Of a stretch of 64,000 nt of DNA, positions 9,301 to 12,300 are shown one piece after another; within the stretch, counting starts at the first letter, position 1; the number at the start of each line of letters is the position of its first letter. Source of the DNA: Bugula neritina. Taxonomy: Eukaryota > Animalia > Bryozoa. The position numbers and the translations under genes are program-made. Under the pieces are notes generated by a model. The model saw only the letters and a program-made list of their open reading frames with translations. It was not told the DNA's origin and searched no databases. The stretch covers positions 15,056,722 through 15,120,721 of the forward strand of contig OZ037766.1 in assembly GCA_964035545.1 (NCBI GenBank). The letters are read 5' to 3'.

Positions 9301-12300
9301 TTTAGTCAATATAATAAATATTATTTTAATGTTTACTGTAAGCAGTCTTTTCCATAACTGTGTGCAGTTTACGTGATGTAATTGAACTGCATTGTTCAAT
9401 CAAGTTTTATGATAATATTTGCTCTACTGTTATCTAGTTTGATGAAGATGGTGGTAAACTTTGCTGACAACACCAAGTCTTTAAACAGAAACCAGCTTGA
9501 GCATAGTATACGCAGAAACTTTGGTGGTTTTGATCCTGAAAAATTTGATCCAATGGAATTCTTCGAGAAACAATGCAATATGGAAACTCTAGAACACCAA
9601 GAAGATGGCCGACCTCCAGTGGATTCAATTGGACTAATTCAATCCAGTCTCTCTGGAGAAGATACAGCTCTTGAAGGGTTGGTGTCAAAATTTGAATTCT
9701 TTTTCCTTTGCCTCTTATATTTTCTTTGCTTTTCTCATGAATTTATCCATGTGGATAAATATTTCAGTTGTATATATAGTTTGGTAAATACACATTTATA
9801 TCTATATAAGTTTATAGCGAATAACCAATATGTATACTGGCTAATTTTTGTTAAAATGAGTGAATATGCAGTAGTTTAAACATGTATAGGTGATTGTAGA
9901 ATGGAAAGTCGATATCTGCTGATATTGACTGAGAACTTGAGTGTTCTGAGTATTATTCTCACCGAGTTTCACTCCAAAGACATGCATCCAGAAGTAGTAT
10001 TTGGTAGCAAGTTCAGAGATGATGTCTCATATACACAGGTGAGGGGAGATAATGACACTATACATAGTCATTTTTGTATGCAAACAATAGTAAACATTCT
10101 AATAATGGTTTGTTTCACTAATTATCTCATGAATATGCCATTTGTTTATTTAGGTGTGTCACAACATCTACAGAATAAAGACATGCATGGACATGGGTAA
10201 ACCTGTGATCCTACTCAATCTTGATGATCTTTACGAGAGTCTATATGACGCCCTCAACCAATACTTCTCTACTTGGGGAGGCAGAAAGTTTGTAGATCTT
10301 GGACTTGGTACTCACAGAGTGAAAGCTTTTGTTGATGACAACTTCAGGTAATTACTTTTAGAGCAGATTTTTCAGTAATAACTTGTTTTACTGCATGTGT
10401 AAATACTTTGATCACTACCTTTTATACACTTACATTAAAGCTAAGTAAACTTTGTTATACATGCTTAGTATGTGCATTTTAATAATGAATCAAGTACTCT
10501 TGAATTGATAGGCGTATGGAAGACCATGTGTTAACAGTTTCATATGCAGCTAAAATTAGACTATATTTACTGCTATATTGTATTTTGTTATTAAAGTATT
10601 GTCACATTTCTGCACATTTTAAACCAAAGAGATTATTACGACAAATGCACTTCTAGTTGAAGCATATGGCTATGTATCTCAGTTTAGCTCAGACTGGGTG
10701 GGAAAAGGATAGTGAGCAAACTCAACATTCAATGTATTATTAGTAGTTGTTACTAGTAAATATATTCTATTACAAGTATCGGTATGAATGATGCAACAAT
10801 GTATCTCAGGTACTAAACTAGCCACCATAGTCTGAGCTTGTAACATTGCAGGCATCAACAGTATTATAAATTTTTAATAAACTGTAATAATCATAAGCTA
10901 CAAATTATATGCATAACTAACTAAAAAAACGAATTAATAGAGGAACAACCTATCCCCAACAGTGTCTGCTGCACTGACTAACAGGAAACACTGACACAAT
11001 TAGCAAAAGCTTTAGAAAAAAATTTCACAATAGCTTATGCCCAGAAAATTCTTTCTTAGATTGGTAGTGATAGCTGACAAGAACAAAGTACACTCCCAGT
11101 TTCCAATTCCTCTCATCAACCGCCTAGAGAAACACTACATCTCTGCCACTTCCCTTCTCACAGATGAACAGAAGCAAGTGAAGAGAGAGCTGGAGAACTG
11201 GGCTGAACAGTTTGTCACTCCGAAGATGCTCTACAAGTTAGTAAATTTAATTTTGATGCCAGATAATTGATTATTCAAGAACTGTTATGTGATGAGAATT
11301 GTTGCCTTTTGTATCTGGCACACCAACTCTACACTTTTGAAGAAAAGTGTGTCCAAAAGTTAAAAGTTGACCATCATATCATTTTTACTTCTTGTGTGTG
11401 ATTTACAGGAATGTATGCCCATCATCATGTGAAGGTTGTGGTGCAGAGCTGACCAGACCTTACAAGCTGTCCTGTCAACGGCACTTCATTGGTTCATGTT
11501 GTAAAGAGAAAATTGAAAATGAACTCATGGAGAGGAAGTGCCCCGTCGAAGATTGTGGTGAAGAAATTCAGCTGGAGGAATGGGTGATCGACTCTGTTGC
11601 TTTGGAGAACAGGTAATTCTCATTTCTTGTTGTCTTCTTTTCTTTTTTAAACGGCTAAAAATCCGAGTGACTTGTAATAACTAATAACTACTAGATGGCA
11701 TTTTTAATTCAAGAACAGTTTGTTTGCATTACATTCTTCAGTTTTGATAGTTGACACTTCTGGTAATCTCTTATACTATATGTTGTTTACTTGATTTTGA
11801 TAATGTAAACGTAATTTTTAAATTATAATAATGATTATCTGATCATTTTGTCTATTTTACCTAAAACTCTCTACAGCCTACACTTTAATCGGTAATAATA
11901 TATTTGGACTTGCGAATTATTGTACTCTTAATTTGTTTTTATGTATTATATTCTTTTGTAGGCAATACTTTGAGAATTCAAGTACAGAGACGGCGTTCAT
12001 TGGGTACAGCACAGAGACGACTGCATTGGCTGTGCGTAAAGCTGCAGAACAGGTTGATGGAGAATCTAATTCTTCAGAGGTATAGACAAATTATCAATTT
12101 ACTTATATAGATTTGTAATTTTTTGTAATTTCAAACTTTTCTATTTCGATATTGGACTACAATTCCCTACATGTTTTCACAGATTCTAGATTGTGCCAAA
12201 TACCATCTGCTTCAATGTGCTACGGGGGAGTCTGTTTTACGTCTCAACAAAACACAGCTGGCATCTGAGGCTAAACAAATACAGAATACTTACATGGAAG

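Follow-up and report, generated by a model that had tools for sequence, protein, structure and literature searches.

The giant ligase RNF213 is known for its antimicrobial action and for its part in Moyamoya disease, and it is still unclear how its ATPase ring communicates with its ligase module. Opinions differ on what its RING finger does, because this domain is dispensable for catalysis and yet is the target of a Shigella effector. The locus described here raises a related question, namely, what a second RING finger is doing in the ATPase part of an RNF213 gene. The second RING (RING2) is encoded by a single exon (positions 11409-11612, + strand) in a DNA stretch of 64,000 nucleotides (nt) from the bryozoan Bugula neritina (NCBI GenBank assembly GCA_964035545.1, contig OZ037766.1, positions 15,056,722 to 15,120,721); this whole stretch is referred to as the window. 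The 68-codon, RING-derived module was characterised by its translation, alignments, inclusion in RNA, an AlphaFold2 model, Foldseek comparison and the ratio of nonsynonymous to synonymous substitution rates (dN/dS). We conclude that RING2 is a lineage-specific, probably constitutive exon in AAA5 that was derived from the E3-RING exon (RING1) of RNF213 itself, and that it most likely serves in non-catalytic docking. The case is of interest to RNF213 and RING specialists, but RING2 is restricted to one lineage and its functional role is deduced.

The identity of the host gene was evaluated from three features of RNF213. By the criterion used for AAA4 (dynein-like AAA core, Walker A GKxGxxKS and Walker B hhhhDE), the gene encodes a competent AAA4, with Walker A GKPGSSKS in the open frame 8140-8385 and Walker B VVVLDEVG in 8584-8757, and these exons are linked by RNA. 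The IR5 insertion is found in AAA5L together with the residue corresponding to mouse Tyr3078, and an E3-RING exon (23251-23427, +) lies downstream of the AAA core and matches Pfam RING families just below their cut-offs. In mouse RNF213, the AAA core covers residues 1775-3405 and the E3-RING residues 3940-3999, and IR5 (3063-3103) is located in AAA5L at the AAA4/AAA5 interface and blocks the AAA4 nucleotide site (Ahel et al., PMC7311170).

The exons around RING2 were aligned with this mouse protein. The exon two upstream of RING2 (10154-10347, +; start approximate, donor AG/gt at 10347/10348, confirmed by RNA joints) encodes an AAA5L strand and the IR5 insertion, and aligned with mouse residues 3042-3101 (E 8e-22, phmmer against PDB); its NQY, which contains the equivalent of Tyr3078, is conserved. 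The exon directly upstream (11060-11236, +) aligned with residues 3107-3160 (E 2e-11). On the other side, a stretch homologous to the downstream exon (11962-12079, +), taken from the cheilostome bryozoan Watersipora subatra, aligned with mouse FIGYHSD. Because the flanking exons align to mouse 3042-3160, around and after IR5, the alignments place RING2 inside AAA5 (mouse about 3160-3175), about 60-70 residues past IR5, and not at the end of the AAA core. The first-pass annotation of this DNA had assigned the insert to a loop of the AAA5/AAA6 region; the insertion between RNF213 flanks is real, but the mouse alignments put it within AAA5 after IR5 and reveal no AAA5/AAA6 boundary there.

The RING2 exon is 204 nt long and of phase 2-2; it opens on the third base of a codon, closes with two bases and contains 67 whole codons, the last of which read ...VALEN. 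Its acceptor reads ...tttacag/G at 11408/11409 and its donor AG/gtaatt at 11612/11613. The introns on its 5' side (11237-11408, +; 172 nt) and 3' side (11613-11961, +; 349 nt) are both of the GT..AG type, and the downstream exon starts the region of the AAA5 small domain; the RNF213 motif FIGYS follows the module on this side. The RING1 exon of the same gene is likewise of phase 2-2, and its peptide (NCPKTCPVC...) has a CPxxC prefix, a C-x4-C last pair and CG[EK]EI; RING2 and RING1 are 37% identical over 51 residues (E 3e-8, BLASTP). The exon had been described correctly in the first-pass annotation with respect to length, phase, splice sites, flanking exons, RING1 features and ligand pattern, as verified by re-reading. 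The introns 9677/9900, 10347/11060, 11236/11409 and 11612/11962, which directly succeed one another, are all of phase 2, and the exon 11060-11236, whose acceptor was also read, is symmetric too.

The ligands of RING2 are C7, C10, C22, H25, C30, C31, C44 and C49. Among 26 RING2 sequences, C10, C22, H25, C31, C44 and also P17 are invariant, C7 is missing only in one N-terminally truncated row, and C49 is replaced by Val in one sequence. Position 30 is Cys in 24 sequences and His in the other two; C30 thus behaves as a metal ligand, since a Cys/His swap is expected of one. The place of the canonical ligand 5 is occupied by Gly in 25 sequences and by Cys in one (P0018). RING-HC (C3HC4) domains have the spacing C-x2-C-x9-39-C-x1-3-H-x2-3-C-x2-C-x4-48-C-x2-C. 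RING2 departs from this spacing: C3-x2-H4 is followed by H-x4-CC, compared with the canonical H-x2-C-x2-C, and the last pair is mostly C-x4-C. Judged from the alignment, all eight ligands are kept with ligand 5 moved by two places, and the module probably binds two zinc ions via a shifted cross-brace. A conserved tail follows (aromatic-x-W-x-[IV]D-x-x-AL-x-N-R). The loop between ligands 6 and 7 tolerates large expansions, to judge from three metagenome fragments (P0015, P0006 and P0013) in which acidic residues are inserted at this place, about 45 of them at most.

Curated RING profiles were not reached above their cut-offs by any RING2 member. Several members matched zf-RING_2, zf-C3HC4_5 and similar families at E 0.001-0.02, and the RING2 of the window matched only zf-RAG1 in Pfam (20.4 bits versus a cut-off of 22). 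Kinship to zf-RAG1 was not accepted, as this sub-threshold match covers just 15 residues around the last Cys pair. An AlphaFold2 model computed from our own alignment of RING2 had a predicted local distance difference test (pLDDT) score of 75.3. The Foldseek search with this model retrieved TRAF6 with template modelling (TM) scores of 0.63-0.68 and root-mean-square deviations of 2.2-2.4 Å, followed by TRIM69, UHRF1, RNF168, Nse2 and U-box domains; the matches had probabilities of 0.9-0.98 and TM scores of 0.6-0.68, and their E-values were weak because the module comprises only about 60 residues. A cross-brace RING fold is therefore predicted for RING2, in agreement with the RING-fold module proposed at first. 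Its dN/dS was 0.06, 0.24 and 0.20 in the three paralog pairs with unsaturated synonymous sites, which indicates that the module is under purifying selection.

Canonical RINGs, such as those of c-Cbl, BRCA1 and TRAF6, contact the ubiquitin-conjugating enzyme (E2) through a hydrophobic residue (Ile, Val or Leu) before ligand 2. At this position, RING2 sequences have Gly (16), Ala (3), Met (3), Ser (2), Arg (1) or Lys (1), so that Gly, Ala or Ser accounts for 21 of 26. At the linchpin position, which follows ligand 8, 11 sequences have Asp and 8 have Gly (19/26), and only two have a basic residue. Both the hydrophobic residue and the basic linchpin of the E2-binding surface are thus mostly lost, and because these residues are missing, RING2 is unlikely to activate E2-bound ubiquitin (E2~Ub) as a canonical RING does. 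An E2-recruiting module, as initially suggested, becomes less likely with the residues for E2 binding and activation not conserved.

A resemblance to the silent partner RINGs of BARD1, BMI1/PCGF and MDMX can be drawn by analogy, since zinc ligands are kept and the E2-contact hydrophobic residue and linchpin are lost in both; those RINGs pair with an active RING via flanking helices, whereas RING2 is embedded in an AAA+ domain. More probably, RING2 would form a rigid knob on the ATPase ring, to which a partner protein, a different part of RNF213 or a second copy of it would dock. We infer both this non-catalytic docking and any link between RING2 and the regulation of the ATPase.

Among the alternatives, a working second E2-docking RING on the ATPase ring, which would provide two entry points for ubiquitin transfer or couple the AAA4/AAA5 state to E2 loading, is unlikely but survives best. 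The RING fold predicted by the model and the fold search is consistent with it, as are the Pro after ligand 7 (23/26), the hydrophobic residue four places after ligand 6 (23/26) and the proximity to the regulatory loop IR5 in sequence. These points are opposed by the small residues before ligand 2 and the rarity of a basic linchpin, and even the canonical RING of mouse RNF213 is dispensable for autoubiquitination (PMC7311170). We regard it as about equally improbable that RING2 is a functional regulatory or sensing module, either as a decoy copy of the RING at which microbial effectors aim or as a dock through which IR5, the nucleotide switch of AAA4/AAA5, is coupled to ubiquitin transfer. If this were true, the bryozoan RNF213s would be a two-RING design made by nature, from which the communication between the ATPase half and the ligase half could be learned.

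The use of the exon was determined from assembled RNA contigs (Logan) of four runs from four studies (X1, X2, X3 and X8), which were mapped to positions 8000-13500. The junction 11236/11409 (GT..AG) was present in contigs of X1 and X2, and the junction 11612/11962 (seen as the joint 11610/11960, with the cut at +2) in contigs of X1, X2 and X8, the last of which is recorded as oligo-dT RNA. A single 566-nt contig of X2 spans RING2 and the next two exons, thereby joining the downstream exon on both sides. Contig depth was zero or near zero in the introns of the mapped region, and X3 had no depth over the RING2 exon or most of what follows. The same joining of upstream exon and RING2 occurs in transcripts of two paralogs (B and E), as recognised by comparison with the paralog peptides (a joint 11204/11399 replacing 22 letters, QKFVAPQ; a loose end at 11217, MPLPIYK-NVC). 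Inclusion of RING2 is clearly the main form of the transcript, and the claim of a real, spliced-in exon is borne out by the two inclusion junctions in contigs of three studies. The exon is probably constitutive.

The first-pass annotation had further noted that the exon can be skipped in frame and may therefore be a cassette. Skipping would join AA/G and leave the frame intact, as claimed, and the symmetry of the exon (204 nt, phase 2-2) is what favours a regulated cassette, in which one-RING and two-RING isoforms would be made and the choice between them would tune the enzyme. This is nevertheless distinctly unlikely. The skip junction 11236/11962 was absent among the 15 joints listed from the assembled contigs of the four runs, and only inclusion junctions were found there; none of the seven full paralogs of this genome has lost the exon, with dN/dS values of at most 0.24 in the comparable pairs, and it is present in both NCBI models of Watersipora. 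Exon symmetry is a weak hint here, because the neighbouring exon 11060-11236 is likewise of phase 2-2 and symmetry is thus nothing special in this gene.

The genome (216 Mb), in which the window corresponds to C2:15056722-15120721, was searched with the exon peptide. Eight RING2 copies were found, and this recurrence of the pattern speaks against chance. In seven cases (L001-L007), the exon has the same neighbours on both sides, AG/GT sites and the same phase, and each of these seven full RNF213 paralogs has its own RING1 exon, located 8-12 kb further downstream. The remaining copy (L008, C2:26.88 Mb; region C2:26879001-26889000, L008/L038) follows two upstream exons and is adjoined by a gag-like long open frame; downstream RNF213 exons were not found within 10 kb of it, and this copy was probably disrupted by a retroelement.

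A divergent paralog (paralog H, C2:26100772-26120000; L035/L037) lacks RING2 and has a single phase-2 intron exactly at the RING2 site. Its upstream exon ends with AAT CA/gt, and 894 nt later ag/G TCC AAA... leads into ...IEKIFIGY. As there is one phase-2 intron at exactly this spot, it has the appearance expected of an empty acceptor site for RING2. The RING1 of paralog H (L017) has the canonical H-x2-C-x2-C spacing, but its end (CSVSDCSEEI...ENR) is like that of RING2. In another paralog (F), the RING1 (L016, C2:15270630-15270797, -) has Asp in place of the His ligand (LPCNDIICDSC).

For the distribution of RING2 outside this genome, the eight copies were combined into a profile; a search of 1.84 billion representative proteins with it gave 25 clusters, mostly single-exon metagenome fragments. 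This list is a lower bound and no evidence of absence elsewhere, as it contains no full-length RNF213 and misses the RING2-bearing Watersipora model P0038. One of the clusters is XP_067940320.1, an rnf213-alpha-like protein of Watersipora subatra. Two NCBI models of this species (P0038 and P0019) carry RING2 at the same site; P0038 (910 residues) runs through the upstream exon, RING2 and the downstream exon without a break, and the Watersipora locus also has a RING1 with the CPxxC prefix and the C-x4-C last pair. RING2 was likewise found between the same flanking exons in three ENA contigs (L030, L031 and L033). A homolog search with a 613-residue Watersipora fragment returned two proteins, and a search with the RING2 region alone returned the two Watersipora models; given the word and length limits of these searches, absence is not implied.

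The converse test was performed with residues 655-905 of P0038 as the query, and the best 120 of 249 matches were inspected, 119 of which contain the upstream motif (PIPLINR). In 112 of these 119, the gap from this motif to F[IVL]G[YFH] is 49-63 residues without a Cys-rich insert; four others have the same short linker with a variant closing motif, two end before the closing motif, and only Watersipora shows 126 residues with RING2. Altogether, the insert was absent at this site in 118 RNF213 fragments, which come from many unnamed sources and from 15 named species, including Branchiostoma, Saccoglossus, Ruditapes, Gigantopelta, Dreissena, Desmophyllum, Orbicella, several fishes and a rodent, and the solved mouse and human RNF213 structures have only a short linker there. 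The RNF213s of vertebrates, amphioxus, hemichordates, molluscs and corals share with the present gene the flanking IR5 with its Tyr, W-x-x-x-F and F[IV]G[YF], but differ in the 49-63 residues between PIPLINR and FIGY, compared with about 126 here and in Watersipora. The statement that vertebrate RNF213 has a mere short loop at this site thus holds for mouse, human and the other RNF213s sampled, and the insert is not a common feature of invertebrate RNF213s, since amphioxus, hemichordate, molluscs and corals have the short linker. On present sampling, RING2 at the AAA5 site appears confined to bryozoan-like RNF213.

Full-text literature searches returned no description of a second RING in any RNF213, and the automatic NCBI models of Watersipora include the RING2 exon without comment; the two-RING layout appears not to have been described before. 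One of the ENA contigs (L030, ERZ4903308) contains a further RING2-like exon at 2857-3039, with H-x4-CC, the ending ...ENR, the splice sites ag/G and CG/gt and phase 2-2. Its host intron is another one, flanked by exons matching P0038 residues 543-619 and 622-670, and the usual RING2 is found at 4842-5063 of the same contig. This extra exon branches first within the RING2 clade. It seems that the RING2 cassette was copied again into another phase-2 intron in L030, which would possibly yield a three-RING RNF213.

The expansion of the family bears on the idea that RING2 is an integrated decoy or sensor, with effectors that attack the RNF213 RING binding the extra copy, so that the enzyme would be protected or alerted. 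In human RNF213, the RING domain is the point of attack of Shigella IpaH1.4 (PMC11958729). This genome contains eight or more RNF213 copies, an expansion of the kind often met in immune gene families, and RING2 derives from RING1; these points are in line with a decoy. The likeness to the integrated decoys of plant nucleotide-binding leucine-rich repeat (NLR) proteins, in which a copy of a pathogen-targeted domain would sit within an immune protein of an expanded family, is one of analogy alone. RING2 differs in that it is under purifying, not diversifying, selection in the comparable pairs, it is just about 37% identical to RING1, and to our knowledge no effector of any bryozoan pathogen is known. 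A decoy role is accordingly very improbable.

The origin of RING2 was traced with a profile (A2) built from the 26 sequences. In the whole-genome search, the eight RING2s were followed only by seven RNF213 RING1 exons (E 1.5e-8 to 2e-3), and the RING1 exon of the window scored 43 bits (E 1.5e-8); the E3-RING is thus the best non-self match of the profile genome-wide. About 40 other RINGs of the genome were also scored, including the 30 best of at least 149 zf-C3HC4 matches. The RING1s reached 27.5-43.7 bits, and the best of the other RINGs 20.6 bits. A maximum-likelihood tree was calculated from 48 RINGs and 68 columns, from which the RING1 L016 was left out because of the Asp at its His ligand. 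RING2 formed one clade (99/99), and RING2 together with the RING1s of this genome formed a group (91/87) apart from 12 generic RINGs and the RING1s of a fish and a EukProt species. The phylogeny proposed as a check in the first-pass annotation thus clusters RING2 with RNF213 RING1s and not with unrelated RINGs.

Besides the RING fold, the host protein and the intron phases, the bryozoan E3-RING copies share with RING2 the CPxxC prefix, a last pair of the form C-x4-C (C-x2-C in the RING1s of the fish and the EukProt species) and a similar tail (aromatic-x-aromatic...E-N, with acidic residues). The E3-RING (mouse 3940-3999; here the exon 23251-23427 and its paralogs) differs in that it belongs to the E3 module, some 800 residues further downstream, and in its canonical H-x2-C-x2-C, compared with the AAA5 location, the Gly at ligand 5, the CC pair and the separate clade of RING2. 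These shared features, the kinship and the empty phase-2 intron of paralog H together support a scenario in which a RING1 exon of the bryozoan type was copied into this intron. Capture from an unrelated RING gene by exon shuffling, with the RING1 likeness due to convergence or general RING similarity, is hardly credible: the RING2 profile weakly matches TRIM34, TRAF6, TRIM56 and RNF168 in PDB (E 0.008-0.1) and the vertebrate RNF213 RING is not listed, but this search is uninformative because the RING1 exon of this genome also fails to list it, and the scores, tree and shared features given above all point to RING1.

The insertion is old and not specific to this gene, because most paralogs have reached saturation at synonymous sites relative to each other and the insert also occurs in Watersipora; on this comparison, the duplication took place before the seven to eight paralogs split and before this lineage and Watersipora diverged. 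The first-pass annotation had envisaged that the RING exon of this gene was duplicated and moved about 12 kb upstream. Its RING1 source is upheld by the kinship and by the empty intron of paralog H, but the event does not belong to this gene. In the proposed course of events, a copy of the phase 2-2 E3-RING exon of the gene itself would have landed in a pre-existing phase-2 intron of AAA5; this would have happened in an ancestor shared by the cheilostome bryozoans, if not by a wider group. The landing place would have been about 60-70 residues after the IR5 loop, the gate of the AAA4 nucleotide site in the mouse protein. At this site, the exon would then have been fixed and inherited by all later paralogs.

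Several points weigh against this interpretation as a whole. The restriction to bryozoans is provisional, as the named Spiralia sampled are molluscs only and the metagenome contigs carry no taxon. The confidence of the AlphaFold2 model is moderate, and the ligand geometry of the adjacent Cys pair is not visible in its output; zinc binding is deduced from the conserved ligands, and a partner of RING2 is presumed. Some RING E3 ligases bind E2 without the canonical Ile, so the loss of catalytic competence is presumptive. The grouping of RING2 with RING1s (91/87 on 68 columns) is under a strict threshold. All RNA data are assembled contigs, which lose rare isoforms, and a minor skip form could escape them; two of the three informative runs are only presumed to be RNA, which the GT..AG joints favour.

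These genes constitute a natural lineage in which a RING copy has long been kept in AAA5 beside the IR5 gate, in every full RING2-bearing member of an expanded family. They also provide a clean case of intragenic exon shuffling, in which the empty phase-2 intron is still seen in the sister paralog H. RING2 may serve as an experimental handle for two questions, namely, what the partner of an RNF213-type RING without E2-contact residues is, and whether its place on the motor matters.

Two further RNF213 genes are located near the one described here. An inverted, near-identical copy lies about 140 kb away (C2:15201467-15212472; L002 and L011), and its RING2 has 99% protein identity, a synonymous rate (dS) of 0.10 and a dN/dS of 0.06, which mark it as a recent segmental duplicate. 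Because of this near identity, short reads and contigs are sometimes unassignable between the two genes. The next paralog stands tail-to-tail with the gene of the window, with its RING1 exon at 57145-57315 (-). Its RING2 exon (L004) is present 2.1 kb past the window end, where the first-pass annotation had proposed to look for it. This neighbour is expressed, as a contig with its sequence NTQQHTVKER was found in the RNA runs.

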